Source: Ascidiella aspersa (Eukaryota). From it: a DNA stretch of 64,000 nucleotides. A program made the position numbers and the translations under genes. Below, piece by piece: positions 39,349 to 63,020 of this stretch. Position 1 is the stretch's first letter; the number at the start of each line of letters is the position of its first letter. The stretch covers positions 11,222,001 through 11,286,000 of the forward strand of contig OZ004612.1 in NCBI GenBank assembly GCA_963924565.1. Reading direction: 5' to 3'. The notes under the pieces were generated by a model that was given only the letters and a program-made list of their open reading frames with translations, did no database searches and was not told the DNA's origin.

Positions 39349-42300
39349 TTAACTTTGGCGAACCGCCAACGAAATTTTGTAGCCGGTCAGCAGCTTGGCC
39401 GCGGCGAAAAAGAACAGGACCGAAATGATCATCGTCATACTGATGACGTAATGGCTGATGCTGGTGCCGATATCAAGCCACGAGCCTTCGTTGCGGACCT
39501 GCGGGAAAGTAATTTAGGTTGTATAAAGCCTATATGTCCTCACTTAGTTTTTCCCCGAAAAACGATTGTATTAAGTTCATTGTCAGACCCTTTCTTATTT
39601 TTTTTGCTATTAGGAATGGGCGTTTTTCAGATGATGCCAGGTCATCGCTAAGATACTCACATCAACAGTACTACAAGAACCTCCCATGAAGATTAGGCAA
39701 ATATTGGTCGACTTACAAAATAAAAAAAGGGTTTAAAACACATTGGTCAAACTTAACAATTAGCCTGGCCGCTCGCAGATCAAGCTGGACATGTTCAGTC
39801 GTATTGCAATGTAGATTAACTTGAGCCATCGTTTTAAAATAATGTATACACTGAAATAATGAAAACGGGTTACCCTAATGTTAAATACCGAAGCTTATAC
39901 ATTACAGATAGCGGGCATTTCGATTGCTTAAATTAAATGTGTGGCGTTTGTTTAAAAAATAAAGGTTAAATGTGTGAAGTTTGTTTAAAAAAATTATAAA
40001 CGTGGTGAACAAGTCACCAAATAAAAACTACGATTATTTCACTTCTAGTTTGTTCGACGGCTTACTTTGGTTCACAAAATGTGTGAAACCTGAACAATTA
40101 CTAAAAAGTTAAAAAGTAAGAAAAATAGTGGCTGCGGCAAACTAATTTTATAAAATTAGATGCCATGTCAAAACCGGCCCATGGCGTATTCAGCACGTGG
40201 TACAACGCGTTGGCCTTGCGGCAATGGTGGCCACAGTTTTTCAACTGTTTTGTGAAAAAAGCTCACCAGAAAGAAGAAGTGTGCGCTCATGAAGTCGCTG
40301 ATGACCAGCACGAAGCAGCAGAGCTGAGTGAGGTTGGTTCTCGTCGCGATCGCGATGCAGCAAAAGGCGCATGCCACCAACAGATTGGGAAGGAAAACCT
40401 GGAAAGCGAATACTTTGCAATGTGCTTTTATAAAAGTATAAAATAAATGTCCATTGTAAAAGCTTGAGAAGCGCACCGCTTCGAACAAAACTCAGTAAAT
40501 TTTAATACAAGAATATGCATTTCGCCATATATATGCCATCATCAGTTGATCTGTACAATATAGTGAAAAATGTACAATGTAAAAAACATAAATAAAATAC
40601 ACCCAAGACTAACATGGACAAAGACAAGCTATTATTGTCCAATAATATGGAACTGAAGCTAACAAGCGATCAAGGTTGTAGCATCGCGGCACTAAGCCAT
40701 GTTTTACGAGTAAATGCAAAGAATGGAAAACGGCAACTTTCTCAAATCGCCTGGACAACCCTGAATACTGCCTTGTATATATTAATACCAAGTTTTAGTC
40801 ATTATATTCAAACAGGAAAACTAATAAATATTCAACTTAGCCTGGATAAGGTCGGTGCCTTTTATTATGTTTAGAATACACGAAAATGACTTTTTTGTAT
40901 AAAATTGGATGAAATTTGAACGTGCCGCTGAATCCTGCAGTGTTTGACGTGACATCTGTTACTTTTATCATAAAACGTTAAACTATCAAGGGCGGGCGAT
41001 TTAGCAGACTACACCGGCCAGCACCTTGTAAGCGAGCAGCGCTCCCATCACGGAATGGTTGAAGACAGTGATGAAGGGAAGAACGACCCGGTTGTCGAAG
41101 CTGTTGATGCTTGCGATGTTGCCTACGCCGAAGAAGGCCAGCACCATGAAGAAGAGAAGCATGTAGCTCCTGCGCATAGTGTGCAAGGACAGCTCTTGAC
41201 GCCGCGCACCGTTAGAGTCTGGAATTAAGGAGAAGACAGCTCGTTTTATATCTTAGAAAAAAATTCTAGGTTTGGCGGTTATAGGTTTAAAAAATTGACT
41301 TCGCAGAGCGTCAAGTGCGTAAATCTCGGCTGTGGAGTTTATACGATTTAAAAGCGCGGAAACGTGGCATCGCTAAATTTGCCCAAAAAAACCTTCGGCA
41401 AAACTTCCCAGTAATAAGCAAAATAAGAAATTTGCTTAAGATTAACATTTGTATATATGTTAAGATCATTTCCAGGTTGAATTCTCAGGTTTGAAAATCT
41501 GAAGATATTTTTTTGAAACTAAAACAATAAACTCAGTGTACGCGGATTTACGAACCACCCTACCAGTTGTGAATCTCAGGCCAAACGCTAAACCCTAGAA
41601 TAGAAATTTTGTCGGAGACACCGTATAACCTCCTTCCACAACCAACAAACCAGTCGTGATTATAGAAATTGCGTATTCTCCTTTACGACCATGATTCTTA
41701 AATTGGGGCGAAGACGGTAGTTCATGCATTTGTCGTAAATTTTCCAGGTTTTGGAACTTTTCTACGTTATCAAAGCTGTTTTTGCCAAATCTTGAAGTAG
41801 TGTTTGGGGATTTACGACTATACCACGTTTAATAGCACTGAATCTCGGGTCAGGCATTGGAATGTTGATTTTTGCAAGGTTCAATTAGAGCAACCCTGGG
41901 CAAACCAGGCCCGCCAATCAATTTAATACATTGGGGTGGATTATTTTCCATAAAATTATTATAAGAAAAAAATGCAGTTACGTTTTCTTTCATGATTTCG
42001 GCAAACTTTGCACTACCCTATTCTTTATATTTAAAACCATAAAATTTACTGCTTTTTTAACTTTTTTAACTAAAATTTACTGCTCTGGGAACTCAGAACC
42101 ATAAATTTCGTATCTGTGTGTTTGTACTACTATTTCTTTTGCGTTCGATGTTCCGAATAAACAATCTATCTATCTATTTATCTTTAAAGGAATTACAGCT
42201 ATGTATATTTTGGAACCCTTTTTTGCCCAAGATAATTCACATGCGGTCCCTTGTAAAAATGAACTGCCCATCCCTAAATTGGAGAGTAACTAACTAAAAC

Positions 42301-45300
42301 GCTGTCGACTATTTACAATTATCATATACGAAAATATATATTCGTCCTCGAAATGTCTGGACCGAATGCCATTTGCTTGGTAAAAAGATTATAGAAATGG
42401 CGTCATTTTCTGCCCGAACTGTAAAGGAAAAACCCACCGATTTCAAGCGGCCGTTCGGCGAAGTCGAGGCTATCCAGATCGTCTGAGCTGCCACTCTCCG
42501 CTGCCGAGACGTCGAACTCGAAGCGGATCCAGATGACAAGCAGCGCACATAGCAGCACACAGAACAGAGCGTCGTAAGATAAGCTCACCAGCAGGTATGT
42601 GGCGCACTGCGCGGCGTATATGCATAGCATGCGGCTCCAGATTCGCGTGCTAGCGAACAGAGGCATCGTCCAGCCGGCGGCTAGAGTCAGCCAGCTAAAG
42701 GCGTGGATCGCGATCGGTACTTGGCCGTTTAACTCCGAGAGTTTGAGCGCAACAGGAGCCAGTATTCCTGCTATGAACGGGAGGTAAAGAACCGGCCAGG
42801 TCACGTCTGCTTTTAGCGTTCGCTTTGCAGCTAGGGAGGCTACTGTGGCGAGAAAACCGGCAGCGACAACTGGCGCTGCGTTCGGCGTTCGTCCGACAAC
42901 GGGCAACACTGGGAAAGCAGCCAGCATCAGGCACATTGCGGCTGCGTAGCGCTTGACGCTCAAGGCGCCAGCGCATGCGAATAGCAACGCGAAAACGACG
43001 AGCTCTAGGCTAAGCACAGAGCGGTGAAAAAAGCTGAGCACCAGTGACCAGGTGCCCGCCACGCCCGTTGCGGTGTACAGCACGATCGAGCGCCTAGTCG
43101 AATGGTTGCGCTGTAGTAGGGCCAGGCCTGCTGCGAAGATATGGCGCTGTGTCGTGATGTAGTACCAAATCAGCAGCGGCAGCGCACAGTAGAGGTGGCT
43201 GGCGACTGGCGCTTGCGACAGGTAGAGGTTGATAGAGACGCACGCGCCCAGCGGTGCGAACAAGAAGATAGAACGACTCACGCGGCTTTTCTGCGACTTA
43301 AGCGGCCGCGACTTGGCCGCCTGGCTCGCAATAAAGCTCACCTGCTGCAGCACAACCGACAGCGAAACGGCGATCCAGCCGCAGAAGCTTGCCGCAATCG
43401 AGCCGGACAGCAGCGTCCGATGGTAGTTATGGTAGTAGTTGAGTCCGCGCAGCGAGAGGTCGATCAGACGCATTGCGAGGGTCTGAGATCCCAGGAAATC
43501 CCCGGCGGCGATCATGTCGGCGCTCCTGCGCGTCAAGTCGGCGACGTCGCTCTGCGTCAGTTCCGCGAAGGGCGAAAAAAGCAAGGCTCGGTGGCGGGTG
43601 GCGTGCATTTTAACGGTAAACTGTTCGGCCATTTGACGCGCGTTGGCCAGCAGCAATTTGGACTTGCTCTGTGGGTCGGCGGAGAGGTAGTCGAGCGGCA
43701 GAACGCCCACTGAGTTGACTGGAACCGGCATGCCGAGCAACAGAGCCATTAGGGGCGCGATGTCGGCTTGGTTGACGTCCATTCGCGATCGAGGGTCCAG
43801 CTGCCAGTGTCTGTCGGTATAGAGTTAGCATTTAAAAGCGTTAGATACAAAAAATATATATAAAAGAATAAGGCAGTCTAGATTTTTTTAGTTTTTCTAA
43901 TTTGCATTAAACTTTGATTAGAGCTCTTCAGTTTCCCAAATTAGGTTAAAATTCGGGAAGTCTAGAAAATAAGATCAAAAGCCAATGCACAATCAATCAA
44001 AATAAAATGTGAATTTTGTTCTTAAAAAATGTGAATTTTGCGCTTAAATTGGCATTTTGATGCTAAATAATTACCTGCATTACTAAAAACTTGCTGTTTA
44101 ACTAAATAACGTAAAACAAGGTAGCATTTTCGCTTAAACCTTTAATTATACCACACTTGTATGCATTTCACAATTAGATTAAAATTACGATTAGTGGTTA
44201 TATTCTCTAATTCGTTAAATTAGTCAACTAAAATTATCTAGTTGCCTATGTATGGTTGCTTAATAATTGCTGGTAATATTTCGTTGTTAGCCATGGACAA
44301 TTGTAAACGTGAAGTTATCTCGGCGATATCGTTATGAGCCAATCTTACAGCTTTGCACAAAAATCACATTATGCCAAATGTTATTCATATTCAATTTCAT
44401 GATAAAAGTTAAAGTGCTTGTTACCGATAAGTAAGAGTATCATCAAAATAAAACTCAAGGAAGCAAAATTCAAAATTATTTTTCTGTTAATCTGCCTATT
44501 CTTGTTCATAATTTTGGTGCTAAGTTGAGATAGACAAATTTCATTAAAAAAAAACTTAACATGTGTTAAGAGAAAACAATTTATTCAAAGTTTGGCTGTA
44601 GTTATTTTAGTCATTTTAAAGTTGGTATACACAGCTTCTAAAAAAAGCATCTGTAAACGCATTAGGTACACTATATGAAATTTAAAAAATATATGTAAAA
44701 TAAACCTTGTCATTTCCAGGTCTTCTGCATTCAGTTTGCTCACCTTAGCAACTGGTTTTGCAGCTCCAGATCCCCAAACTATCAGTGGGGTGAGGGTTTC
44801 AGACGGTAGCCCAGCCCCATGCGATCCTAGAATAAAAACACAATACAACATATGCTAATTTGCAAGTGATGTTTATAACCACATAACTGGGGATAATTAA
44901 AATTACAATTATGGTATCAATAAAAGATATACACATAGATGTGTTAAACAACTGTGGTCTAGCCTTTAGGAAGCTGCTTTTTGGCTAACGGTTACCGCTT
45001 AGGTATCAGCAGTACATTAAAAGCCATTACAGACCGACCGAATCTGTTGACCAATTCTGGTATCAGGTTTAGTTTACCAGACTTTTTAAAGAAAACTATT
45101 TCTTTATAAATCAAGCTACAAAAAAAAAATATTAATTTGATATCTCCAACTATAAAAAAAATATTTGTTTTCTGACCCCAGTCAGTCATCCCATGATCAG
45201 AGGTGAACACATAGCTTGTCTTTTTATCATGGGAATAGAAATCCTCAATAATGCCAACAATCCGCTTCACTCCCTTGTCAACAACTCCGATGTTTGACAG

Positions 45301-48072
45301 ATACTCTCTGGAAATCAGTTAAGCTCAATTTACAATAGGGATGCAAAAAATTTATCTTAATATTATACAGGCTACACTTGGTTAGTATGTGTTTCCAACA
45401 CAGAATCTAGTCCTCCAACAGAACACAATTGCCGACCATAAAAGTTTTAAATTTAATAGCTTGATGATGGTGAAATGCACAAAAATTTAACAGCTTGATA
45501 AGTAAACCGCTTCGATTAACAATCGGTCAGCAAGGTTTAGCAATTTTACTATAAATGTGCATTTAGCTATATAAATCAATGGCATTATCAGTATATTTAT
45601 ACAATATAAATATTAGAAAAATATATATATTTAAAATATTAAAAATGTAAAATAAATAGATAAAATACAACCAAGAATGTATAAAAAAATATTTATTTTA
45701 CATTTTTAATATTTTAAATATATTTTAGTATTTATTTGTACAAAAACTGATGATGCCATTCATAAACGGCAAAATACATAATTATTTTAAAAGTTTTAGA
45801 CCTTCCTGACTGATTGTTGTTCAAAACGGTGAAGTTCTTAAGCTATATGCTACATTTTTAAGTATGTTACCCTTACCCATATTAAAACGTGTTTCTCGGA
45901 GTAAACAATAAAGTTTTAGAGGAAATTGACAGACTTAAAGGTAATCAAAAAAAAATATTGATTGCATTTAAAATGTAAAAACATTCGCAGAACTTTACAC
46001 ATTATAAATAACTTTTAGCCACATCAACAGAACAAAATGACCAACTTTAAGATTAGCTTACTTTGACATGGGTTTGTGACTGTGACCATTTGTATCAATA
46101 CCGAGTAAATGCAGGAAAAACACAATTTTGTCCTGGAAAAGTTCAGCTTTGAGAGTCTGGTTTTCTTTGGCGTTGGCAAAAAATGTCTCCACCTCATCAA
46201 ACACCCATTCATCAATAACCGAAGAGTCATCTCCGGCAAAATTAACAAGATCATTATCAAAACAGTGGATGTGAACATGTGGACCAGCACCTGGAAATGT
46301 ATAATTGTTTTTACCTTTTTTAGCTTTTAAATAATTCATGGTATTTGATACTAGGGGTTTAAATGCATACAAAAATAGTAGGCGTATTTTTTTGGAAAAT
46401 TTTTTTAGCCAACTGACAAAAATAAATTGAATGTTTGAACAAACAAAATAGAGACCAAAACTATGGTGCTAAATACACAAAATCAAAATCCGAATATTTT
46501 TTGCAATAGTGTGTAGCAATAAATGTAATATAGGAAAAGTTAAAAGGTCTTCAGAACACTTCGACAAGCTACCATGATTAACACTCGCTCTACAACGTTG
46601 CGCAACACACTCAAAACTGTGCTTGTCATTTTTATATGGAAACATTTATAAACTAGATGTTGCTACTTGCCTTTATTAAAGATAACCGCAAAAAAAAAAA
46701 AACTGTGACATAATAAACACATACCCTCTGAAAACATTGGTAAAATATCACAACTGCCCCATGACCAGGTTGTTCTACTCTTGTTGAAGACACTATCAAA
46801 CTCAACAGGGTTCTTTTTCCAACCTGCAATTTTATAAACATTGTAAAATGAGTAAAAAAATCTGAAAAACACAAAATGCAAAAATGGGAAAAAAACAAAC
46901 AAAAATATTACAATACTTAAAAAATATAATTTATGTTTTCTTAACTTAAAACTTGTAATGAGTGCAATTATACAGTTTCCCATGGTATTGTATTTTGAAC
47001 TGTACCTTTTAGAATTGCACTGACATCCTCATAGAAACCGGCAATAAGAGCAACATGTCCTGGCCTTGATTCAGTTGGCACCCTTGTGTGGGAAACGCCC
47101 CATGAACCATCATTTTCCATTAGATTCCTTAAATAAAATATTGGTTAATTTAGTAATTGACATGTTTTTATATGCAATGGAATATTAATAGGAAGTGGCT
47201 ATTTCACTGGATCGCTCTGTTATGCTTGCACCAATACAGGATTATTTTTTGATTTGGTAAAGGGTTGGGGTTAGCGTTTGGTCACAGTGGAAAGCATAGC
47301 AAGTGCACCCGTGATTTTTTTTTTCAATCTTTCAAAGGTATAACCCGAAAAAAATCTGAACTGCACCCCAAATATGTTAAATGCTTATGTGGCAGACGTT
47401 TACAGTGCAATGAGTGCATCGGAAAATCATAAAGTGCACCCCGAAAAATTGAAAGTGCACTTTTTTACCTTTGTTGCACGATTTTTTGGCCGTGCAGCCA
47501 CAAGTTCTTGACTAAGTCTGCCATACTTTCCAGACTGGGCGGTTGGGTGTTTGTAGTATTAGATTTAATTTTCAAAGTTTTCCATAATTTATTTTAGAAA
47601 TTGATTGAAATTACTTTGTTAGCCGGGTAAATAGCCTCAGGAGGTGCCTTTAGGCTATTTGACCGGGTCAACATTGCACCCATTAGTGATTTGTTGATTT
47701 GAACTACTTTGGTGTTCGGGTGAATAGCCTCTTCCAAATTCATATTGAATAGCCTAATGCGTTTATTTTTCTTACCATGTTTTAACAAAACTATTAACTA
47801 ACAACAGTACTACAACAATAACTGAACGCCGTTTTTTGCATTTACCTCAAGTAGGGAGCTCTAGATTCCCCATTTTCGTCCAGTTCGTAAAGTTTATCTG
47901 CACGTAAACCATCGCCCACAAACAAGACTAATCTTGAAGAGGGTGGCTTCACTTTCGGGACATGTTCTCTCATGCCATGTACCAACGGCGATTTAAAGTA
48001 TATATCGAATATCGAGGCGAAAAGAATGAAATGTACAACAATACTAAGAGAGATGAAAACCCAGAACTGCAT
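39349..48072 (-). CDS. PIGN: GPI ethanolamine phosphate transferase 1 (PIGN/Mcd4), canonical copy PIGN-A; exons 48072-47846, 47127-47006, 46823-46725, 46290-46062, 45307-45177, 44826-44706, 43810-42438, 41218-41025, 40398-40267, 39498-39349; 925 aa
   Basis: Motifs [90 protein letters not shown] and [13 protein letters not shown]. All junctions are GT-AG, phases are consistent and the frame is open to TAA. Confidence 0.95.
45492..45844. mobile_element. Fold-back element in PIGN-A intron 4 with degenerate hammerhead-like cores in both arms
   Basis: Inverted ends match 35146-35235. ctgatgatgcc...ggcaaaat at 45747-45775 has a mirror copy near 45558-45592. Confidence 0.55.
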
Positions 48073-48764
48073 GATTTCTGTTCAGAAATTTCCCAACTGA
48101 CTTTCAAAGCAGCAAACCGTCAAGCATCAGTGATTGACCGGTTTGTTTACAACTTGCTTTTTCATGCGTTTAATAAAAATTAGGCTTTTGATTTGGTAAC
48201 ATGTCAAAATGCACAGTTGTACACGTAATATTCAGGTTTAAAATATAAATTAACCGTAAAGAAATAAGGCATATATAAGGCAACAAATATCTGCAGTAAA
48301 GGCTTTATCGCCTACGAATAATACATAAAACAAAGCCATTGTATTGGGGTGAAGGTGTGCGCGCGATGTGATTAGGATTTGGGTTCGGGTTAAAATTATT
48401 CTAGGGTAGTTAGTAATAAAAGGGGTTTGCCTCAATACAAACGGTCGCCGACGTTGGACTGCAGAGGCATTTCCTTTTACCTCTATACCAAAACCGCTGT
48501 AAGCCTAGCCGCCTACGCTATGTAAATGAGGTAGAATAGTCGAATTTACCGACTCTAACTGGGACGAACGAAGCAGCATCAACAGGCAGACCTGCCAACT
48601 TATCGAGGTGCCCTAATCCATTAGCCTTCCTTGCAGTTGCTTAGAATGAGGCTTCAGGCCATTAACTCGCGAGTTATCACGATCCATGGCCAATGTTCGT
48701 CGAACGTCGGTCAGTGATGTGGATTCTTTCGGTCAATCTCTAAGGGACCTTACATAAGATTTCC

Positions 48765-49035
48765 GCGCCCATCAAACATCTCAAGCCAGATTAAGCCCGG
48801 AGCACGTCCAGACCACATTAGCTTGGAATATCTGATCCATTCTGCAATTACTCAAAGTCATGACTTTGTGCTTCCCCATAAACTTCTCCTTGAGCAACCT
48901 GGATCCCAATACTCTTAAGGAGAGTAACAGTGGCAGCGATGCCCAAATCAAACAAACCTTTGACGAGTTAAAGAGCCATCGCCCAATATCTTCGCCTTGA
49001 ATCACGTTCGAGGTGCTTGAGCATCTTATCCAGAT
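48765..49035 (+). mobile_element. Decayed non-LTR retrotransposon (LINE) reverse transcriptase fragment
   Basis: Frameshifted translation IKHLKPD*...PDHISLEYLIH...IPILLRRVTVAAMPKSNKPL...KSHRPISSP*ITFEVLEHLI matches the LINE RT N-terminal motifs KxPGPD and PKxxK...YRPISL...KxLE. Confidence 0.7.
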
Positions 49036-51638
49036 CGGCATCGCATAGTACCTAATCGACCAAACAAATGGTTCAGGAGCCGACTGGCGTTAAACGGAAA
49101 ATTTTGACTATCAGAACAGCAATTTTCAGTATAGGAGGAAACATTTGGAACAAAAGCAGGGATTTATGCGGTAAGCTTTTTTTCCAGCCAAGATAAAAGG
49201 AAATCTATAGGCCTAATACGACATTTAAAAGTTTGTTCTGAGCTTAAAAAGATAAATGCAAACTGTTAACAATCCATAGCCCTACTATTCTATGATGAGT
49301 ATCACAAAACACATTAAAATTTAGGTGGATTGTTAGGACCTAAAAAATGAATATATGGTACCAAGGGTAAAAAAATAGATTAGGCTAGTTAAGCTATATT
49401 TCACGTTTGCCGAAAACTTCAAATTACCCGTAACAGCCTATAAAATCCATATCAACAATGTAAGCCACACAACAAAAACAGAGTTCGTTGAGGGGACACA
49501 ATTCATGAAAAGTCCATCCGATTTTGCCTGTCATTCTTGCGCAGGGGCCTATTATTTTGACTAAGTTAACTCTATTTGTTTTTGGATTCAATTTAGTTTT
49601 TATTATTTTTATGCCTGGTTTTAGTCGGTTCGTGGGAAGTTTCTGGCACTCTATTGTAAATTTTTCAATTCTTACAAGGATATTTATGCCAAGATAACAT
49701 CTAGCACAGTGTGCTTCCCAACCTGGGTGCAATAACCACATTGCCTTGGTAACCGATTTTAATATTTTTCAACGTTGTAGTTATATACAATTCGACATGC
49801 AGAACGTAACAGATAGTACGGTAAATAGCCACACCCTAAACTTCACAGAAAGACGATTGTTCTTGTTTTGTACGGTTGATAAGTGATAACACAGGTCAGC
49901 ATAATTTTTTCGGACTAAAACGTATCAGGTGCTTTTGGTCAATTTTGGTTTGCAGCGTAAAAAATGACCTCAATTTTATTTAACATTACGAAATTCAAAA
50001 TTTTGACGGTAAGAACAGTAGCATAAAACATTATTCACCTACACGCATATATTAGTATTTAAAATAGGCCTATACCAATGTCCGAAAAGCAATAAACTTT
50101 TTAACAGCACGTATATAGATGACAATATTAAAACTTACATCATTTTATGAAACGAAGTTTCTGTTTTTTTAACTTTCGAGAATATTCATAGGTATCTTCC
50201 CTATCTCTTATATATAATGCAACACTAATCGGCCATCAATTTAAAATCGACAAAACAGGACTAAAAGAAGACGGCAACCAACCCCATTGCTAAACTTTGT
50301 TTTTTCTCATAGTTTTTACATCTTGGTGGAAACGTTCACCTTAAGATCTTCACTTAGAGCAGCTCCTATATAATTTTCTACAAAGTAATTTTAACTACTG
50401 TGCAGAAATTACATACAGTTCTCCGCTCATGGTACAACGTTTTTTTTTAAATGTGCAATACAGAACTAACAAGTTCTTTTTAATCAGGTGATTTAGTGTT
50501 GCCTTTAAAGTTGCTTAAAACATGGCTAAAGCAATTCAATCTTATTTTAATTTCGAATCATGGTTTTGATATTATCCTTGCCTTTTATTATCTGTCTAAT
50601 TTTTGGCTCATCAAATATTCTTGCTTTCCACTTTTTATCACCCAAGACAAGATATTTTATGCCGACAAACTTAAAAATGGCCATGTTATCTATTTTTATA
50701 TACTACTTCATCAAACCCAGCTTAAGCAGAGATGGTGATAATTCTTCGTTTCAGATATTTTTTCCTTCAGAGTAAATTACTCGCGTTCTCAATTAAACGA
50801 CCTATTGGTGTCGGTCAAAGTTGTTTGTTTGTAACGACTGAATTTTAAAAGCTTTACTTTGCTCTACGAGGAACGAGAAAAAACAAAATAACATTGCCAA
50901 ATTTTCAAGTTAGGGTAGGGGGCATTTAAGCTAAACCCCTGGCGATGTAGCCTATATAGTTAATTTGAGCAGTTTGTTGTGCCCCGATAAGTAGCCTACA
51001 CAATCATGTATACTGTTTTGGTTTGCAGCAAACAACAGCAATTAACAATCGTTGTCGTGCACCTGTTTATTGAATGTTTAGGTTTCAATATTGGATCATA
51101 ATCTAACTTCTGGAGGATGTAATTTTAGACGTGTTTGATAAACACACGTACGTCCTTATCGATTTCTTGGCGAATTGGTTATTCCAATTGCAATAAAGCT
51201 TTAAAATATCATGCACCGTAACGAAAAGGTAGATTTTACAAAAGAAACTATGGCCCCACAGCCCACACATATGCAACTACAGATGATTTCCGATCTAGGC
51301 TTCTAGTCCTGCAACAAAAGTATAATAATGTGATGTGTCGTCCGGCCAACATGTGCAACAGGGACATGCCAAATGTGCACGTCCATATGTGTACACTTTT
51401 CCACAGATGTGCACTTTTTTAAATTATGCACTTTAAAATGTGCGTACATTTATCCAGATAGGCTATATATACAACTTTATTACTGATGGGTCCCAATATG
51501 TTTCCATTTTTTTAAACCTCATGCAATCCCTAAAATATAACTGTTCGATAAGTATTAGTGCCTGAAGGGTTTATATGTTAAGTTTAAATATGATTTGTTA
51601 CTCATTGAATAAGTTTAAGCGATCCTCTGTGTTCTAAT

Positions 51639-52158
51639 CAGACTTGGACAGTTAATTCTAGTTTTCTAATTCAATGAATTAGAGCCAAATGCGGCTAATT
51701 CTAATTCTAATCTAATTCATGAATTGCTTGTGTGCTCTAATTCTAGTTCTAATCTAATTCGGATTTTACCAAAAATGCTACTTTGTCCAACGGCATTTTT
51801 AGTTTCTTAGTCAAAACAAAGAATTTGAATTCAAACTCTTTGGTTGGAACAGAATTTTCACAGTCTTAAAAGCATATGCTATGTTAAAAGGCTTAAAAAT
51901 TAGCACATACTAATTATCATTCACATTCTTATTAAAATGCTTCCCGATTTGAATGTAATTGATTGTGAATAATCTCAAATGTAATTCTAGTTCAAATTCA
52001 TTTTGTTACGAATTCGGTAATTCTAATTCTATTCTAATTTCAGAAAAGTCAAAATGATCTAATTCTAATTCTAATCTAATTTGAAAAAGCTTAAATGCTC
52101 TAATTTTAATTCTAATCTAATTTAAAAAAGCTAAAATAAATCTAGTTGTCCAAGTCTG
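51639..52158. mobile_element. hAT-type MITE with AATTCT(A) subrepeats
   Basis: TIR CAGACTTGGACA/TGTCCAAGTCTG; perfect TSD GTTCTAAT at 51631-51638 and 52159-52166. Confidence 0.85.
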
Positions 52159-52310
52159 GTTCTAATGACCAATAATGTCAACTTGTCATGTATGATTCGA
52201 CGTTAAACAAAAATCCACTTGCAAAACAAGGTAAATAAAGGCCTTAAAAACAGCAAAACCTATATCTTGCGAGTATACTAATCTCGCATTGTAAACAAAT
52301 TTATATCGGA

Positions 52311-52916
52311 CAACGTTCATATTGATAGTGTTTGGTGTCGTCGCAAAAAAATCGAAAACAGGTAAGTGGGTTTTTGATAAGCTGGAAAAGTTTTTGAAGA
52401 TGGAAAGACAAACGTGTGTTTGAGAAAAAGCTTAATGCAAAACAAAATCAAATCCTTTGTTTATTTAGTGTAAATAAACACACAGGCCATCGATTTAACT
52501 CGGATTTCGTGTAAAACGTTGACTGATTAGGTTTGTTTTTGTACCTATTATTTTGCTGAATGTAATGCAGTGATTTTTACAAGTAATGAAGTTGCTAGAC
52601 AATTAGCAAAAGGTAATTTTTTAGGGTATTTTACAGTACTAAATAGTCGTTTAAATCTTGCGCTATTAACTTGTAACCGAAGTATTTGTTCAATAGTGAA
52701 ATTGTCGAAAAGGTGATTCATAAGATGGTTGGTCTGTTTGATTTCTACTCCCGCGATAAAAAAACAGGCTACTTATTCAAATCTGATCACAGAATAGCTG
52801 TTGAAGGTACGAATTATTAACATAGGTTGGATTAAATTTATAAAGAGAAAAATAATAACCTATCTTTATTAATATATAATATTGGCAATGAATTGCTGCG
52901 AATTGTACAGGTCTCT
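52311..52916 (+). pseudogene. Decayed genomic duplicate of PIGN-B exon 4, intron 4, exon 5 and the start of intron 5
   Basis: Colinear match to ~56770-57545 (gaagatggaaagacaaacgtg, gaaaaagcttaatgcaaaacaaaatca, aagatggttggtctgtttga, tattggcaatg), including intron sequence. Carries indels, a TAA in the GIDT motif and DHG>DHR. Confidence 0.85.
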
Positions 52917-53624
52917 GTATAAAAACTCGTGTCAGGAGTAAACTACGACAAACTAGACGCGTAAAAGACTCTCTCAAAGCGGGTATAAACCTACTAAAAC
53001 GGCTAATTAATTAAGGCCTGGCAAAAAATTGCCACCGATCAGCGGTTAAAATGTACTTGATCATACTCGATCATTTACGTTTATATGCCTTGGTACGTTA
53101 TCACTCTTCTCATTGTTATCGTTTTTCTGGGTAAGTTTACTGCGCAAAAGAGATTTTGTGGGACTACTGGAGTTATGATTTCACAGAGATAATGCAATAA
53201 ATATAACGCTAAAATTCTCATTGATTTACTTATCAGGCGAAAGGGTATTTTCCGTTAACGAATAAATTGAAAGATTAACTTTGCGAAGATGAACCCCAAT
53301 GGCCGCAGTTTATTGCTCCCCGGTAATCACTACAAAATGGTACAAACAATATCACAAGGTTTAAATATTGCAAGTTGCTAAAACAATAAATAATGATGGT
53401 CACACGCACACGAAATCGGTTCCCTGCGCGTACCACAGTATGTGAAGTATTGGCCTCGGGTGTGAATTGAATTTTCGAAACCACCAGAAATTAACCGCGA
53501 CTGCGCAAGCGTGACGAACGGTGTCCGGTAACGCACCAACTGTTTTCAACGAACGCTTGGGCAAATATTAACTCGTGTGCTGGAAGTTGGGCTTCAGCAA
53601 CGCTCACCTAGGCTAGTCAAGAAA

Positions 53625-56600
53625 ATGGATTTTGTCCTGTTTATCGGCCTAGGTAATTTAGTTCACGCAGTGTTTTTCGCCTCGATATTTGATATTTACT
53701 ACAAGACGCCGCTGGTGCACGGAATGAAAGACCAGGTTCCAGATTACAACGCACCTGCAGAGCGCCTTGTGCTGTTCGTTGGCGACGGGCTAAGAGCTGA
53801 TAAACTGTACGAGCTTGACGAAAACGGACGAACAAGAGCTCCATACCTGAGGTAAGCGATTGATAAAAGTACCTGCGGCACGCGCTCGTTCAAGTATTAT
53901 ATTTGTAAAACTGTTTAACACAATTGACTATAGTTTGAATTTTGATTGGGCTGTGTGATAAACTGGCTTTCGTGCTGACTGCTGATGCATGTTTGGCAAC
54001 CAATGCTATACTGGCTTTAGAGCCTAAGCATGCTTGGCAGCTTGCAAAATAACTAATTGCAAATGACATCAATTTTTTAGTTCAACAACTTTTCGAAACT
54101 AAGCAACTAATTACACCAATCATTTTCTTTTGTTTATTGTCATCGTTTTTTTTGAGTGAATCTTTCTGTAGAAATTATTAAAAAAAGCTTTATATTGTAA
54201 TTTCGCAAAAATCATTTTTGAAGTCGCTACACGACATACCGTCCACTCGTACAGCCTTCAACCTATTGTCCTTTCGTTTTTTTATTATTGTGGAATGGTT
54301 GTTTTGCTGAACAGAAATGTCATTGAAAAGGAAGGTTCTTGGGGAATCTCGCACACACAACCACCGACTGAATCCCGCCCAGCACATGTTGCAATGACAG
54401 CAGGCTTTTTTGAAGACCCCAGTGCCATATATTTAGGTAACGTGCTTCGTTTTTGAAATTTCAAATAAAATAAAGGTATGGGCTGCCGTGATCAATATTG
54501 TCCTTTGTAATTTTTGTCAAAACCGTAAAACCTGGAATGAAAAAATGCGGGTCTATCTGTAGTAGGAAGACACTGCTGTATGTATTGTATAAAGTTACGC
54601 TGAGAAAACGATAGTTTTAGTGCCCACACAAGGAAATGGTTTTCTATAACCTACTCAGCTGGGCAGGCTTTGTTTTCTATTAAGGCTTCTACTTCTAGTT
54701 GTTTTAGCTTATAAACCGGATACACCATAAACTCAATAGTATATTTTGTGCAAAATGCATTTCGCACCACATGTATGTAACTAGAAATGGCTTTCAATAT
54801 AGTTTTCTAAGCAAAGGTATGTGTTATGCCGTCGGGTTAATATGTTTTTGTGTATACTATGCAACAGAACAGATGGTTGCTAGCCTAAATTCTCAGTCGA
54901 GTTTCATCAGCACGACAACTACTTCCTATTCAATTACGTCACTTTCCATGAAATAGCTATTGTTGTTCAAACTCATAAAAGGCCCATATTCAACCCATCG
55001 GGTGCTTTTTATTGGAGCACGTTATGTTTTATTTTGCGATATACGCGTTTAAACTGTAGTGGTCTACAAGATTTATTAGTCGCATTTTCTGCTAAACAAT
55101 GTTTTTTCCCACCAACCGGGGACCTTTTTCAAACAATCATGGTTCTCTTAGATTTTTCTGCAACCGTGGGTCGCATAACATTCTAACCGTAGTGAATTCC
55201 AATGTTGTAATGACCAAGACTAGACTTAAGTGCACTAAATAAGTCACTGTTTTCAATTTGACTGGCTTAAGTCATTTGAGAAAAATGACTTGACTTGACC
55301 TAAGTCTTTCGGGCAAATGACGACTGCACTTAAGTTTTTCGGATAAATGGTTTGGGTCAAAATGAAATGTTTTAATTAAGCCTTTTTTAAAGGGGTTATA
55401 TGGTAAAATATCTAAATTATTGGGGTTATATGGTAAAATATCTAAATTTTTCTACAAAAAAAGATTTGCTTGCTATATGTTAGGCTACGTTTTTGGTTAT
55501 TTTTTTAGTTGAGATATTGCTCGTAATCAAGATAGTTTAGCAATTTTGTGACATTAACGTTTAATTGCTATGCCAAGGTTTTGATTTGAAATTGACTTGC
55601 TATAATAATTTTACGAAATGATTTGACTGGGACTTAAGTCATTTCAAAATGGCTTGTCAACAACACTGAACCTATTTGTCTAAGCTATTGTTAGCTTGGT
55701 CCTAATTACCAGAAAGATGTGAACTATTTTTATTGTATATTTCGCATTGCATTTAAAATATTAGGAAATTATTCAGTCCTTATTAATGAGATTGGTTGAT
55801 TTCAGGTTTTAGCGACAACCCCGTAAAGTATGACAGCGTTTTCAACAAAAGTAGGACAACATGGTCGTGGGGAAGTTATGATGTTCTTCCAATAATTCTA
55901 GACGGTAAGACTATTTTTAGTATGAAATTAACATTTTAAAGAAAATGAGACATTTACTAAAAAACATATACGTGCTTGTTGTCAAAATAATGTTTCTAAT
56001 ATTAAACATAAAGGATCCCAACAATGTGTTTCGGTATAAATCCTGGCAATCAATACGTGCAAAAATTCGTTTATCTATCTTGATTAAAATCGTAGATTGT
56101 CAAGATGTTAATTTATTACGCGATTTTTCTTGTCGTGTTATTCCCCAACCTAACCGAATCCTCTAGGGCTTTCTGTGAAGGTTTATCAACGTAAAATAAG
56201 GAGCTAGAGGCGCATTACCATTATATTTTCGTTAACTATTTCAATAAAGCTAAGGAACTACTGTTGTTTTTTTAACTGTGATGAGTGGTAGTGGCGCATG
56301 TGACCTTTTACCCGGTTTTATACGACTCTTATGGTGATTTTGTTCAACATTGTAAAAGTGTTCGACAGTGGTTCTCAACCCTTTTTCCACGGCGCCCCGT
56401 TTAGCAATTGTCCGGTGAATTGCGCCCTCCTCAGATAATTTTTAAATGTCATATCAAATGCAGTTCTGTATTTCTCGGTTACATATCAGTGAGACAAAAC
56501 GGAAGGTACATCGTTAATCGTGTAAAGCGCAAACAAAATTGATTTCATTTGTTTTGATGGGCTAAGCGTTAATATAGGAGACTTGGCGCATTGGGCACAT

Positions 56601-59600
56601 AAAAAATTGCTCGTGCTCGATTTATTAACTTTTATTAAGCTGATTGTTCCAAACCTTGTTGTAAGGGAATTGTAGTTCTGTTTGGAAACCGCGTATATTG
56701 TCACCCGAAAATCGTAAAAGTAGTATACTTTGCCCAAATAATATTTGATTTTATTATTGCAGGCCTTCACCACGTTCATATTAATATCCACCCGAATAGT
56801 GTTTTGTGGATGTCGCAAAACGATTATTCAAAACTAGATGAGTGGGTGGTAGAAAAAGTTGCAAAGTTTTTAGAAGATGGAAAGACAAACGTGACGTTAA
56901 GAAAAAGCTTAATGCAAAACAAAATCATATTCTTTGTACATTTGGTTGGAATAGACACCCAGGGTCATCGATATAACCCGGATTCCGTGTAAGAAAATTG
57001 ATTTATTACGTTTGTTTTCGTACCAATACTTGCTTGGTGTAATGCAGTGGTTTCCAATTGTAAAGAAATTGTTACAGCTAAACAGGAAACTAAAAATAGG
57101 GGACTTGGAAACGGTTAAGCATTTTTTCGGCTAAACAATTTGTGCAATGAATAAATTATACTGGTATTATTTTGCAGGCAATATTTGTCTAATATCAAAG
57201 TTGTAGATAAAGGGATTCACAAGATGGTTGGTCTGTTTGAGGACTTCTATTCGCACGACAAAAAGACAAGCTACGTATTCACATCTGATCACGGAATGGC
57301 TGCCAAAGGTACGACTAACATAGGTTGCTTAGGTTGGTTATACAGTCTAGCATAAATAATAATAATTGTAATACTAGGCCTATATTGTAAGTGCTGAATA
57401 CAACGAGTCAAAGCGATGATGCTTTAATGCAAAAAAAAAAGAAGAAAAACACTAAAAATCGAGAAACAAAAGTTAATACGACAGTATGAACTATTGGCAA
57501 TGGATTGCCGCAAAGTGCGAATTATAGAGGCCTACTGGTCTCTAAACAAAAACGGATTTCGAATGTAAAGTTGTCTTTCGTATAGCTTTGTTGTACGGCA
57601 GAATAAATTGATTTCGTATTTTATTAAGTTTAGCATAACGGTTTAATACTGTACACCGAAAGCCATCGCAGACTCACCGAATCTGTTGATCTATGATGCA
57701 AGCAGACTAGAAAAACAACTAGCCCGCAGTGAGGTTCGAACTCACGACCTACGGTCAAGCCGGGACCGTCGCTCTATACCAACTGAGCTATGCAGGCTCA
57801 GAAGGAAACGAGTCGAGAAACAACCATGCGCCAATGCTTGCTCAATCAGTACAAGCAACCTTATAGAAGGGGATCCACAGTACCATATCATTTATTCAAT
57901 GAAACATTCACACATATGTGTGTTAATAACTGAGATCTAGCCCTTCGAAGCTGATTTTTGACCAAGGACTACGGCTTACGTATAATACAATTTTTAATAC
58001 ATCTTTTAAAGTTTTGTCGTTCGGTTGATAAGGCCAAAACATGTTTTCTTCGTCATACAAAAATAACAGTTACATGAAATGTATTGGTTTTCAAAAGTAA
58101 TGTTCTCTGAGTTAAGCAATACTCGTATTTTTATTGGTATACCTACATTTACTGTTTTAAAGGTGGCCATGGTGGAACATCGTGGAATGAAACCCAGTCA
58201 CCCTTCATTGCGTGGGGTGCCGGGCTGACAAAGCACCACTTAAAAAGTAATATACCGTCATCCGAAGTAAAACGGACTAGGTATGTATGGAGTTCTACAT
58301 ATGTTGCTTTCACTTTTTCCGTATTTATTACTGAGACTGTCATTTGTGCACATATAAGTATATGTTCAGTAGAAAGAGAGTGGCCCAAATAATAGATAAA
58401 AGATTCATTCTTTTATTAGCAAACGTTTCGGCAATTTCTTTTGCCATCATCAGTGCAGTAAAAATGAATCTTTTATCTATTATTTGGGCCACTCTCTTTC
58501 TACTGAAGATAATGAACAGGTCCGTGTTTAGTGTTCCTAAGTATATGTAGAGGGTGATTTAACATGAAAATGGCGTATAATTTCATTACGGAGGTGCAGC
58601 AGATCTACTTGAGCGTGGGTATTTCAACAATTCGTTGGTGTCACTGTCTATAATAGCTATTTTAATGCTTAATTGACTAAACCAGAGTTTCTTACACTTT
58701 TGCGGATTGCGCCCCTCGACTACATGTCAGTGATGCAAAATAAAAATACAAAAGTGGACAGGTAGTGCATGGTCGTGCAAAGCGCAAAAAAATGCGTTTA
58801 TTTAATTCAATTGGCTAAACTTTTATTTGTTTTGGAGACATGAAAAAGTCGCTCATTGCTCGTACTTGATATATTGTCCCGGTTTAGCCAAAGAGCCCAC
58901 CCTGATGGTTAAAACAGTGTGGTAAATAATTTAGTTTTCACTGTTTGAACGATGTTCTTTCGTTTTAGGTCTTGGAAACTTGATCCCGAGACCCGACACG
59001 ACGTTAGGCAAATCGACATTCCACCTCTGCTCTCGTCTCTCATCGGACTCCCGGTCCCGGTAAACTCCCTGGGGACTCTCCCGGTCCCGCACCTCGCCTT
59101 GGGCGAAGCGAAAAAATCGAAAATGCTCCTGGCGAACGCACGGCAACTGGCGGAGCTCTTTCTAACCAAGAAGAAGGTGGTGGAGGGCAACGCCGTACTC
59201 TACATTCCGTTTTGGAGCCTTAACGAAGGTATAATCGCTGACAGAGTGCGAGACATCATGGATCAAAACATTGCCAAAGAGTACCAGCTCGCGATCAAAA
59301 GAAGCTACAAGCTTATTGAACTTTCACAGGCCGGTTTCCATTATTACAACACCTACTGTTCCAACTTGTTATTGCTTTCCATAACGTTGGGCTTCGTCGG
59401 CTGGGCCCTGCTAACCCTGGACAGAATGCTGCTCGAAATCGGCTACGTAAAACGACAAGTCTGCAAAATCGACCCCTTTCAATCGCGTCAGTCGAACCGC
59501 CACGTCTTGCTCGGGTTTTTATTCCTGACCACGTGCCTAGCATTAAATCTGTTTCTGTCTCATGCGGACGCGACCTCCTACTTGTACTGCGTTTTAGTTG

Positions 59601-62363
59601 CAAGCATTTGGTACCTAGTTGTAATGCGTCGAACCACGTTCTACGTAGCGATTTGCAGCCTGAAGCAGAACGAAGTGATCCTGCGAAAGGTGGTGGGTTA
59701 CATTGCGATTGGAATGATTGGCGTATGGTCGTTGGTTCTCAGCTTCTCATACCGATACGTCCTCAGCATTCATCTGGTCGCAGTCGCCGTGCACTTTATC
59801 GCTCACTACAGAAGCCAACTAAGAATCTCGGCCGCAGCGCTTTGTCTCTTTTTATCCGTTTTCACTCTGCTACCGACAGTCGAACGAGAAAGCAGCCTGT
59901 GGTCTGTGACTGTGGCGGGCATCCTTGGCTCAGCTTTCGCCCTCCAAGCTGCCAGCAAGATCAAATTCAAGCCACTGCTCGCCCTGTCCGCTTTTCCGTT
60001 TTTTACGCAGCTTCTGATCCGCCTCTGTGCTTCAAACAGGTGGAACGCCCCAAGCTACGCGTATGTGTTCGCGTGGACCTTGTTGATTTGCGCATGGATA
60101 GTGCCGCTTCTTTTGACCACCAGACTGTTGCCTCGCCTTATCTGCATCTTGACGCTCCACTGTTCGGTGTTCTTATGCATGTGCTTGTCGTACGACGGCC
60201 TGTTTCTGGTGGTGCTATGTGCCTTGCTCGTGCTTTGGATTGCGCTGGAACGCGAGGCGTCGACTGCTGGATCCGCCAGTGGGCGCTCACGTAGCGGCGA
60301 CTTGGTAGACTTCGATTTTGCGCAGCCGGAACTTGCCTTTGGTGAGTATATGCCACGCGTTGTGGGACTAAGTAATTTGAGCCTTTATGTAAAGCTTAAC
60401 CGGTCTCCGACTAACAACAACGGATGTTAATAGCGTCAGTTCTAAATATTCCCGTGCCGTGTTTTTTAATTTGTGTTGCTTCTTGTACTTATTTTCGTGC
60501 CCCATACAATCGGCGCTATATTGCTTGTTGTTTCATACAATATTTCGTTTACATGTTTCCAGGTAAAAAAATTCAAAATCAAGTAAAAAACACAAAAATC
60601 AGTACGACGCGATATTACTTCTAAAAACGACTTACAATAAAACAGCATATAGCAAATAAAAACACACTAATCATAATTCATTATAGTCTATATGTGTATA
60701 AAACTGATATCGGCTTATATAATTTTCTGTAACAGATTATCCGACAACAATATCAGAACCCTCGTTTCACACGGCCAGGAGGTGCTACTTGTTCCTGTTT
60801 TTTACCGTCTTGGCCTTCTTTGGCGTCAGCGACATCATGAGCCTTAAGAGTTACAACTACGACGTTTTCCTTTTGTTTACGAGAAGTGCGCAACTACGTC
60901 GAACTGTTTTTCTGGCCTACAAGGTAATTCTGGTAGCAACAGCATATTTAAGGTAATTACAATTTGCTAGTATAGCCCTATACGGCTAAGAGGTTTTATG
61001 CTTGTGAAAAAAAACGGGATTCAATGTATTCTGTCCCAGGGGAGGATCCAGGAATTAACTTTAGGGGGAGGCGATTTGTTTGTTTTATTTTTTGACGATT
61101 TGCAAACCTTTTTTGTTTAATTACACGTAATTACGTCGGTTAAAACATGTATTGAAATTTACTTCCGTTTGGTGTTTCCTGTTTTGATAAATTCGTCAGT
61201 GAGAATTGCTATGTCCTGATATACATGCTTCACGATGAACCCGTAAGGCAAATTTTGCCGGTTTTTGTTTGCTATCTATTTTATTTCACCTATTTTGATC
61301 GATTAGAGCTAGTTCTGTTGGCAATGTATTTAGTTGGTTATTAAAAATATTGTTGAAACATTTTTCTCCTTTCACGGTATTTCTATACCTGGTATTCCTG
61401 GTTTTCGTGTGTAAGAAGTTCGCCGTCTATTAGGTGCTTAGTTACAAGCTTCCCTAAAACTAGTTTCCGACCAACAAATAACGTGCACCATTTGCAAAAT
61501 TTACTAATAATTTCGAGATGTTGTCATTTGAGTATTGGCCTACTTTCCTAGCGTTTGTAGGGGTAGGCTATATTTCAGGGTAGGCAAATTTTTCAGCAAC
61601 GCGAGCCGCGTTCTAAAATTGACAATTTTGAAGAGCCGCATATAATGGATAAAACTTTGTCAGATAGATTAAGTTTTTTCGTACCAACGCGTGAGATTGG
61701 GCTGTGGAGACCACAACAGAATTTTGAATAAATTATGGTAACAAATTCAGAATACTATGGATTTTTTATATCTTTTTTTTACAAAAATATCCGCGCATAT
61801 TATAAAAATGTTTTTAAAATAGGTGAAAACATCATTAAAATAAATGGTTTATTAGTTAAGAGAGTATATGGTGATATAAATAGTTGGTTACTGAACATGC
61901 AAACTCCGCAACGGGGCATTTGCGTTTTTTTATTGTTATTTGTTTTTCCTTTTTCAGGTTATAATGCCGTACATTCTTCTGGGATTTGCGTTTTCGGCCG
62001 TTCAAATGGTTACTGGTAGTAAATTTCAACATCTGGTTTGCACAGTCATGATTATCGCGGAGTTTATTAATGTCCATTTCCTCTTCATGGTAAGTTTCTA
62101 GACACAACAGAGCGGTTGAGTACATGCGGTTTTGTTTTATAACAGTATGGATTTTCCTCAACAGTGTTTTATTTGTTTTATTGAAATCATGGAGTGTTTT
62201 CTAGATCAAAACCGCGGCGCCTTGGACCGACATCGGGACCAGCATCGGAAATTACATTGTCAGCATCACCCTTCTTGCCACTGTCCTTGACTTTATACCT
62301 CTAGCCACGTTTCTTTTACGTTTCAGGTTTAAATCAAACGTACTGCGACTTGCGGCAAATTGA
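53625..62363 (+). CDS. PIGN: Divergent PIGN paralogue PIGN-B (GPI ethanolamine phosphate transferase 1-like); exons 53625-53851, 54315-54436, 55806-55904, 56763-56988, 57178-57308, 58163-58280, 58969-60341, 60736-60923, 61958-62089, 62205-62363; 924 aa
   Basis: Same 10-exon layout and phases as PIGN-A; exons 1, 2, 3, 5, 7 and 9 are identical in length. Motifs [41 protein letters not shown] and WTDIGTSI. Frame is open to TGA. Confidence 0.92.
57721..57797 (-). ncRNA. tRNA-like Pol III element (likely a tRNA-derived SINE head) with a non-canonical anticodon loop, in PIGN-B intron 5
   Basis: GCCTGCA TA GCTC AGTTGGTATA GAGC G ACGGT CCCGGCTTG ACCGT AGGTC GTGAG TTCGAAC CTCAC TGCGGGC T followed by AGTTGTTTTT. 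A and B boxes are intact; related decayed copies lie at ~62896-62940 and ~63021-63075. Confidence 0.65.
58418..58457 (-). ncRNA. Minimal type I hammerhead ribozyme motif (Penelope-like-element style) in the loop of a 45-bp perfect inverted repeat
   Basis: Minus strand reads tgca CTGATGA t GGCAA aagaaa TTGCC GAAAC GTT tgc t AATAAA. Arms 58365-58409 and 58463-58507 are exact reverse complements. Confidence 0.65.
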
Positions 62364-63020
62364 AATTCCTCGAAATCCAAACGTCGTTTCTTTTGTCCGA
62401 TCGTTATCCAGGCAATGTGTTTAGAAATGTATTTTGTCGACTTTCTGTGAGCATTTTTTGTACTGAATATTTCCACTGTGTCGTTGATGCCGATTTAAGA
62501 AAATACACATATTTAGTCATATAATTCATAGTATTTGTACGTTATACACTGTATACAGTATAATATTTAAAGCGTAATATTGAATGCTCTTTAGTCTTTG
62601 ACTAGCAAGTCCATAATGTATTATAAGTTTGATGCGATTCTGTAAAATATGAAAATCGTTATCGCAGAGAGCCTTCAAAAGAAAAATAGTGTTTTATGTG
62701 AAATCAAGCAAAAATTCTAACAATTAGACAACATTAGCAATAAACAACATATTTGCCAAAACATAGGGTCTACAAACACTACGTTTATTAACGATCAAAA
62801 TGCATTTCATAAATTCTTAAAGCATAGTACCCTAGTCTAAACCGGTGTCCTGCAGAGGGGCTAATTGATATCAGTTAATCAATTCGGCATTTTCGTGCAA
62901 GCAAGGCAAAAAACAACTAGCCTGTGGTGAGGTTCAAACGAGTTCGGCCGTTTAAACAGGATAGAGCAGGCAATGGTGTTCTGGTTGTGCTTCGACTTAT
63001 TTCCTTTATTTCTTTCCCCC

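Follow-up and report, generated by a model that had tools for sequence, protein, structure and literature searches.

In the available text of PMC7125958, PIGN is described as moving ethanolamine phosphate (EtN-P) from phosphatidylethanolamine (PE) onto position 2 of mannose 1 (Man1) of glycosylphosphatidylinositol (GPI), and PIGO (GPI-ETIII) and PIGG (GPI-ETII) as members of the same catalytic superfamily with a lumenal active site and a multi-pass membrane part. Here we describe two complete PIGN-family genes, PIGN-A and PIGN-B, that lie head to head in a 64-kb stretch of the genome of the tunicate Ascidiella aspersa (assembly GCA_963924565.1, 308.6 Mb in 75 contigs; contig OZ004612.1, our C6:11222001-11286000). 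We refer to this stretch of 64,000 nt, which is without any N, as the window and number all positions of the gene pair within it. PIGN-A is the canonical copy. We put a probability of roughly 70% on the reading that PIGN-B is a transcribed and maintained PIGN paralogue from an old local inverted duplication, one that has evolved rapidly, kept its catalytic domain, rewritten its C-terminal module and altered its handling of the substrate.

The closest described systems resemble PIGN-B to different degrees. Like PIGN and yeast Mcd4 (GPI ethanolamine-phosphate transferase 1, GPI-ETI), PIGN-B is collinear over the full length, carries the PigN membrane domain (PF04987) and alkaline-phosphatase-type motifs, and falls inside the PIGN tree. 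It differs from PIGN/Mcd4 in that it coexists with a canonical copy, is only about 38-42% identical to any canonical PIGN and replaces 16 of 81 family-invariant alignment columns, of which exons 8-10 account for 10. PIGO and PIGG are set apart by their membrane part, which is PF19316 rather than PigN, and the window holds no PF19316 match. The genome has two PIGO/PIGG-type loci, one on C9 at ~926-933 kb with PF19316 and PF01663 and the other on C1 at ~3.504-3.505 Mb, the latter found with two exon peptides of the C9 locus at 42-46% identity; the only PF19316 match in the genome is at C9:932773-932946. The C9 locus may be PIGG-like. As both loci are present, the idea that PIGN-B stands in for a lost PIGO or PIGG could be ruled out. 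The nucleotide pyrophosphatase/phosphodiesterase ENPP4 (PDB 4lqy) is a more distant relative (E 2.6e-5), in which DGFRAD, TKT, D..GH and SDHGM correspond to the PIGN catalytic motifs in an alignment with rat PIGN. These metal-ligand and nucleophile motifs are kept in both PIGN-A and PIGN-B, the metal-binding residues being those general to the alkaline-phosphatase superfamily. The ENPPs differ in being soluble or single-pass proteins that are without the PigN membrane domain.

Structure, transcription and selection of the gene pair

The start codons of the two genes lie at 48072 on the minus strand (PIGN-A) and 53625 on the plus strand (PIGN-B), with a divergent intergenic region of 5552 nt (48073..53624) between them. 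Each copy has 10 exons, and intron positions and phases match between the two, with GT/AG sites consistent with the reading frames. The exons of PIGN-A total 2778 nt (925 codons and a stop) and those of PIGN-B 2775 nt (924 codons and a stop); position 39349 is the final base of the PIGN-A TAA and 62363 the final base of the PIGN-B TGA. When the minus strand of 39000-48300 was compared by tblastx with the plus strand of 53300-62700, ten coding blocks were paired and their order was kept. Nine full-length reference PIGNs, taken from rat, a hemichordate and other tunicates, were matched by tblastn to PIGN-A in 10 collinear pieces at a mean identity of 45-54% and to PIGN-B in 8-10 collinear pieces at 36-42%, with coverage from reference residue 1 to about 908-932. 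For the tunicate references, coverage ended at about 913-932, with 10 pieces on PIGN-A and 9-10 on PIGN-B. All searches were made by single exon, and gene-wide counts are sums over the exon-wise rows. The initial annotation had proposed two ten-exon PIGN genes in divergent orientation with start codons ~5.5 kb apart, and a PIGN-B frame open over 924 codons; the tblastx and tblastn alignments, the splice sites and the exon sum agree with it on each point.

In PIGN-A, exon 1 (47846..48072, minus strand as for all its exons) encodes an N-terminal membrane helix and the GDGLRAD motif, exon 2 (47006..47127) the serine at the nucleophile position, exon 3 (46725..46823) WKKNPVEFD, exon 4 (46062..46290) GIDTNGH, exon 5 (45177..45307) SDHGMTDW and exon 6 (44706..44826) SHGAG. 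Exon 7 (42438..43810) encodes NQADIAP along with the greater part of the PigN membrane domain, and exon 8 (41025..41218), exon 9 (40267..40398) and exon 10 with the stop TAA (39349..39498) complete the gene. All ten exons were placed by tblastx, tblastn and GT/AG sites; exon 7 also matches PF04987 at 184.3 bits, against a cut-off of 25.4. In PIGN-B, all on the plus strand, exon 1 (53625..53851) keeps GDGLRAD, and exon 2 (54315..54436) and exon 3 (55806..55904, with FSDNPVKYD) follow, all three placed by the same tblastx, tblastn and GT/AG evidence. Exon 4 (56763..56988) encodes GIDTQGH, exon 5 (57178..57308) SDHGMAAK, exon 6 (58163..58280) GHGGT, and exon 7 (58969..60341) RQIDIPP together with the PigN domain, which scores 142.2 bits. 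The last exons are exon 8 (60736..60923), exon 9 (61958..62089) and exon 10 with the stop TGA (62205..62363). Full-length reference PIGNs also carry the Pfam catalytic domains PF01663/PF00884; in the single-exon scan, where the pieces are short, neither rose above its cut-off, and both copies gave a weak Sulfatase match in exon 5 (E 0.04-0.05). A profile scan of the whole 308.6-Mb genome found PigN-domain loci only at PIGN-A and PIGN-B, and searches with the exon-1 and exon-5 peptides returned only PIGN-A, PIGN-B and one fragment.

Reads and contigs from sequencing runs X1 to X4 were mapped to 56700-62400, which corresponds to PIGN-B exons 4-10. Contigs of X1 and X2 cover the exons and introns of PIGN-B evenly and contiguously, as DNA would, and hold single-nucleotide polymorphisms (SNPs) of their own. 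Contigs of X3, by comparison, are without introns on PIGN-B. One of them, record 19 (610 nt), maps in three blocks (60735-60921, 61956-62088 and 62204-62400) that meet at GT..AG joints, 60921/61956 (cut +2) and 62088/62204 (cut +1); with these cut offsets, the joints fall exactly at 60923/61958 and 62089/62205, as modelled for exons 8, 9 and 10, and both joints of exon 9 are thereby seen. A single X4 read also spans the joint between exons 9 and 10. Another X3 contig, record 17 (2369 nt), covers exon 4 (on 56762-56988) and exon 7 (on 58966-60340) with 246 nt between them, a length that would fit exons 5 and 6, and the 491 nt that it extends past exon 4 would fit exons 1-3 preceded by a leader of ~43 nt. 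In X4, a stranded RNA-seq run with the same species label, reads fall on the PIGN-B exon bins in the sense orientation only, at a depth of 0.1-3.7 (figures from about 6% of the run). The spliced X3 contigs and the sense X4 reads show that PIGN-B is expressed: it is transcribed from its own strand, spliced as modelled and present at a low level.

Polymorphism within PIGN-B indicates purifying selection. Eight of the 14 SNPs listed in exons 4-10 are synonymous and six non-synonymous, which at a site ratio of 541:1769 (1:3.27) gives a ratio of non-synonymous to synonymous polymorphism (pN/pS) of 0.23 (one-sided binomial p 0.007), and the gene is not neutral. Between PIGN-A and PIGN-B, the proportion of synonymous differences (pS) in the five ungapped exons (1, 2, 3, 5 and 9) is 0.66-0.84, which amounts to saturation, and that of non-synonymous differences (pN) is 0.15-0.39, the value of 0.39 coming from exon 9; the catalytic exons 1, 2, 3 and 5 show a pN of 0.15-0.22 at a pS of 0.66-0.81. 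Of the other exons, 4, 6, 8 and 10 differ in length between the copies, and exon 7 contains internal indels. Because synonymous sites are saturated, the ratio of non-synonymous to synonymous substitution rates (dN/dS) between the copies is uninformative, and for the same reason the duplication must be old. At such an age, 924 open codons and nine intact introns are incompatible with neutral decay. The good conservation of exons 1 and 5 is not due to recent gene conversion, as their pS values are 0.81 and 0.79. PIGN-B is neither an artefact nor a pseudogene, and it is selectively maintained.

Uneven divergence and the C-terminal module

The proteins encoded by PIGN-A and PIGN-B have the same residue at 399 of 883 aligned positions (45%). 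By exon, identity ranges from 74% in exon 5 and 69% in exon 1 down to 32-33% in exons 6, 9 and 10; by region, it is 59.7% over exons 1-6, 38.3% over exon 7 and 37.5% over exons 8-10. The last three exons of PIGN-A are 60-68% identical to those of other tunicate PIGNs. In a Tajima-type count with Clavelina as the outgroup, 184 changes are unique to PIGN-B versus 59 to PIGN-A (p 1e-15), and four other outgroups give 141-189 versus 54-61. PIGN-B changes about three times faster than PIGN-A, and the asymmetric divergence that the initial annotation had described is real.

Trees built from exon 7 place PIGN-B with PIGN-A among the tunicate PIGNs. In a HMMER search of 1.84 billion representative proteins, PIGN-B exon 7 found no protein above 36% identity; the top match, P0001, is an A-type gene that is 49% identical to PIGN-A. 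The closest named relatives of PIGN-A are Ciona savignyi, the Ciona intestinalis cluster, Clavelina lepadiformis and Styela clava. Both copies fall within the tunicate PIGN clade (support 100/100), and PIGN-A, PIGN-B and P0001 form a clade in both trees, supported at 99 by the Shimodaira-Hasegawa-like approximate likelihood-ratio test in the quick one, with 49 rows, and at 99/95 in the more careful one, with 30 rows. These three sequences also have in common indel states that are absent from the other tunicates sampled. Their terminal branches measure 0.61 (PIGN-A), 1.38 (PIGN-B) and 0.49 (P0001). Within the clade, the best tree joins PIGN-A with P0001 at 77/41, and forcing PIGN-A and PIGN-B together costs 0.65 log-likelihood units (p 0.44 in the approximately unbiased (AU) test). 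For the nearest relative, metagenome contigs (L005-L009) show an A-type gene with 10 exons and extend only ~950 nt upstream of exon 1.

The exon translations of both genes contain the catalytic residues of the alkaline-phosphatase superfamily (the aspartate of GDGLRAD, a Ser/Thr nucleophile, DxxGH, SDHG and a distal histidine). In PIGN-B, the motifs GDGLRAD, PTESRP, GIDTxGH, SDHG and GHG are untouched, as had been proposed from the outset, and the six motif changes that the initial annotation listed for this copy can likewise all be read in its exon translations. At the conserved columns of the changed motifs, PIGN-A has the state of 21 canonical PIGNs. This set, which includes rat, ray, toad, gar, Ptychodera, a stick insect, Ciona, Clavelina, the canonical Styela copy (Styela-1), cotton and the eukprot sequence "Clim", spans vertebrates, insects, a hemichordate, other tunicates, a plant and a unicellular holozoan. 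PIGN-A keeps 79 of 82 columns that are invariant in the set and 172 of 182 that are conserved at 90% or more, versus 65 of 82 and 133 of 182 for PIGN-B. The 16 invariant columns replaced in PIGN-B (two in PIGN-A) are unevenly placed, with 10 of 15 changed in exons 8-10 versus 6 of 66 elsewhere (Fisher p 8e-6) and none of 16 in exons 2 and 5. The changes in exons 8-10 take in the GNxAS..SF motif, a lysine, a proline, GSW and a Ser-His pair; the C-terminal GNxAS..SF and GSW..SISH conservation is found in PIGN-A but not in PIGN-B.

A second tunicate shows a comparable pair. The initial annotation had regarded PIGN as normally single-copy, which does not always hold, since two proteins of Styela clava are annotated as "GPI ethanolamine phosphate transferase 1-like", and the records that hold them are equal in length (24.3 Mb). 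One is canonical (XP_039251345, P0174) and the other sits on a long branch (XP_039250742, P0011), and the two are 38% identical. Like PIGN-B, P0011 keeps 65 of 82 invariant columns, and its changes are again concentrated in exons 8-10 (8 of 15 versus 9 of 66 elsewhere, p 0.002). The two long-branch proteins deviate at 8 common invariant columns, versus 3.4 expected (p 0.0037), an overlap that could come in part from unequal constraint among the columns scored as invariant. P0011 differs from PIGN-B in its place in the tree, beside the canonical protein of Styela, and in most of the residues that it has at replaced columns. Identity between PIGN-B and P0011 is 50.5% over exons 1-6, 24.5% over exon 7 and 22.8% over exons 8-10. 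In public annotation, the two Styela proteins can be found under the generic name only. A full-text literature search, whose scope left out subscription papers, found no paper on a tunicate PIGN paralogue or duplication and none on a PIGN/Mcd4 structure.

Intergenic, intronic and neighbouring features

The intergenic region contains a decayed partial copy of PIGN-B (52325..52829, plus strand), made up of exon 4, intron 4 and exon 5 and recovered by repeat search, alignment, blastn and tblastn. It lies ~800 nt upstream of the PIGN-B start codon, its frame contains a stop, and neither DTxGH nor SDHG is preserved in it. The relic matches PIGN-B at 71% over 542 nt by blastn, and in tblastn it is 71% and 63% identical to PIGN-B exons 4 and 5 versus 32% and 49% for the same exons of PIGN-A. 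As it is nearer to PIGN-B than to PIGN-A, it was copied from PIGN-B at the DNA level after the two genes had split. In the same region, at 51680-52125, we observe five copies of a 41-nt unit ending CTAATTCTAATTCTAATCTAATT, arranged in two clusters 280 nt apart.

Several introns of the pair carry repeats. A very high-copy repeat occupies 57464-58036 in PIGN-B intron 5, where the summed contig depth reaches ~5e5 in X1 and X2, and a tRNA-like sequence (57721-57797, minus strand; Rfam 54.8 bits) lies inside it; the repeat is probably a tRNA-derived short interspersed element. A 55-nt piece in PIGN-A intron 5 (45012-45066) is 75% alike to it, and given the high copy number, the pieces in the two genes are probably independent insertions. 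In PIGN-B intron 6, a 52-nt inverted repeat (58361-58511) is 96% complementary across a 47-nt spacer, at a repeat depth of ~4e4; an Rfam search of this intron at E <= 0.1 found no hammerhead family, and a MIR7996-like hairpin was sub-threshold at 47 bits against a gathering threshold of 119. In PIGN-B intron 8, one bin at 61475-61665 has an X4 sense depth of 1.6, and low-depth X3 contigs also lie on this intron; the signal might come from unspliced precursor or from an exon that is missing in the annotation.

Base composition differs between the two copies of exon 7. That of PIGN-A is rich in guanine and cytosine (GC), with a GC content of 0.51 in the 42-44 kb bin versus 0.44 in the 58-60 kb bin, in which the first two thirds of PIGN-B exon 7 lie. 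In both trees the amino-acid composition of PIGN-A exon 7 was flagged as unlike the rest of the alignment, so the compositional outlier is the canonical copy and not PIGN-B. Away from the pair, GC-rich open reading frames (GC 0.53-0.54) lie at 21493-23108 on the plus strand. They include a frame of 286 amino acids at 22248-23108 with a basic region and a leucine-zipper-like stretch, reminiscent of Fos-type basic leucine-zipper proteins.

Interpretation and significance of PIGN-B

The reading that we prefer begins with an old local inverted duplication of PIGN-A, which would have occurred inside the tunicate lineage of this genome and its nearest sampled relative. PIGN-A then stayed canonical, and PIGN-B evolved about three times faster. 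PIGN-B kept the lumenal catalytic domain, including the metal-ligand aspartate of GDGLRAD, the nucleophile-position serine of PTESRP, DTxGH, SDHG and the histidine of GHG, and it rewrote the C-terminal membrane module of exons 8-10, a part that is otherwise held constant between plants and animals. PIGN-B is most likely still a phosphoryl-transfer enzyme of the PIGN type in the endoplasmic reticulum membrane, one that would handle its lipid-linked substrate (the GPI acceptor or the PE donor) unlike canonical PIGN. Its role would then be narrowed or only partial, or its specificity would be new, and the housekeeping transfer of EtN-P to Man1 would probably be carried by PIGN-A alone. The initial annotation had gone further and proposed neofunctionalisation. 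The grounds for it hold, in that PIGN-B is full-length, expressed, spliced, under selection, intact in its catalytic motifs and asymmetrically diverged, and a changed function is plausible; no result shows the other acceptor glycan or donor head group that it named.

Several observations weigh against this reading. The activity and substrate of PIGN-B are inferred from sequence, and a PDB search by sequence returned no PIGN-like chain, only ENPPs. The replacement residue is identical in PIGN-B and P0011 at 3 of the 8 common columns, and mostly different residues fit relaxed constraint as well as they fit a new function; with the C-terminal changes, they are as compatible with the loss or relaxation of a sub-function as with a gain. 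The trees use exon 7 alone, which is half of the protein. The SNP sample is small, with at least 14 exonic differences, and its test is blind to transition bias. X3 is a run of unrecorded kind, taken as RNA-derived solely because its contigs are without introns, and for exons 1-3 the splicing is supported by homology, by GT/AG sites and by how long a single contig is. Expression of PIGN-B in X4 is low.

A bolder version of the preferred reading is that the independent fast copies, namely PIGN-B, the second Styela protein and possibly the group P0005, P0006 and P0010, make up a new GPI-ethanolamine-phosphate-transferase-like class acting on another lipid-linked acceptor or using another donor. 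We advance it only tentatively, as less likely than not. In such a class, the lumenal phosphoryl-transfer site would have been kept, and the C-terminal membrane module, although unvarying between plants and animals, would have been discarded.

PIGN-B could instead be a redundant or expression-partitioned isoenzyme that performs the same transfer of EtN-P to Man1 in other tissues or stages, with its sequence drifting neutrally. The intact catalytic motifs, a PigN domain above the Pfam cut-off, purifying selection and low-level expression are all compatible with such an enzyme. However, of the 81 columns that show a single state in all 21 canonical PIGNs, PIGN-B has changed 16, including 10 of the 15 in exons 8-10, whereas PIGN-A has changed two. 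The canonical reaction can hardly do without residues that have been kept for so long, which argues against the isoenzyme, and we regard it as rather unlikely.

It is more doubtful still that the divergent tunicate copies are one ancient subfamily, a tunicate-wide "PIGN2" uniting PIGN-B with P0011, P0028 and P0005/P0006/P0010, in which the motif losses were inherited. The glutamine of the EQF motif is lost in all six of these divergent rows, most of which also changed the same few exon-7 columns, and the excess of common deviations between PIGN-B and P0011 (8 versus 3.4 expected, p 0.0037) points the same way. In the careful exon-7 tree, however, each divergent group joins a different canonical lineage: PIGN-B joins PIGN-A and P0001 (99/95), P0011 and P0028 join Styela-1 and P0007 (95/91), and the third long-branch group, P0005, P0006 and P0010, joins P0172 and P0004 (94/88). 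AU tests, made on exon 7 with groups named after the tree had been seen, reject a union of PIGN-B with P0011 and P0028 (p 0.0035) and of all six divergent rows (p 0.009), but do not clearly reject that of PIGN-B with P0005/P0006/P0010 (p 0.058). The indels agree with the tree, as PIGN-B has the lineage-specific indels of PIGN-A and P0001, whereas P0011 and P0028 are undeleted like Styela-1. PIGN-B is also nearer to PIGN-A than to P0011 everywhere along the protein (59.7%, 38.3% and 37.5% versus 50.5%, 24.5% and 22.8% for the three regions). Because the tree, the AU tests and the indels agree, we favor at least two independent tunicate PIGN duplications, each of which would have released the same C-terminal module.

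Slow decay of a duplicate that is transcribed merely as a by-product of a shared divergent promoter region is very improbable. The threefold rate, the low RNA depth and the nearby PIGN-B-derived fragment that has already decayed are what one would expect of such a gene. Yet, despite synonymous saturation, 924 codons are open, all nine introns are intact and transcripts are correctly spliced; pN/pS is 0.23, and exons 2 and 5 are unchanged at 16 invariant columns. An assembly artefact, either uncollapsed haplotypes or a mis-join, can be dismissed, since copies with 45% protein identity and saturated synonymous sites cannot be alleles and contigs from three other runs hold PIGN-B with SNPs of their own, those of X1 and X2 contiguous over exons and introns, even though the read check covered 56700-62400 and not the adjacency of PIGN-A and PIGN-B.

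In the assembly of GPI anchors, PIGN counts as one housekeeping step, and to our knowledge, nothing is known about the role of its conserved membrane part. PIGN-A and PIGN-B form a natural contrast, in which PIGN-B keeps the catalytic site but differs at two thirds of the invariant positions in the last membrane module. Styela clava offers a second and apparently independent case, and together with PIGN-B it provides a contrast for what the C-terminal module recognises. Should PIGN-B act on a new substrate, the glycolipid biology of tunicates would gain an unknown phosphoethanolamine-type modification. If it merely duplicates the function of PIGN-A, residues that are invariant across eukaryotes would be dispensable, a result that would bear on human PIGN variants. 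The pair is, in either case, an experimental handle on the conserved C-terminal membrane module of PIGN.

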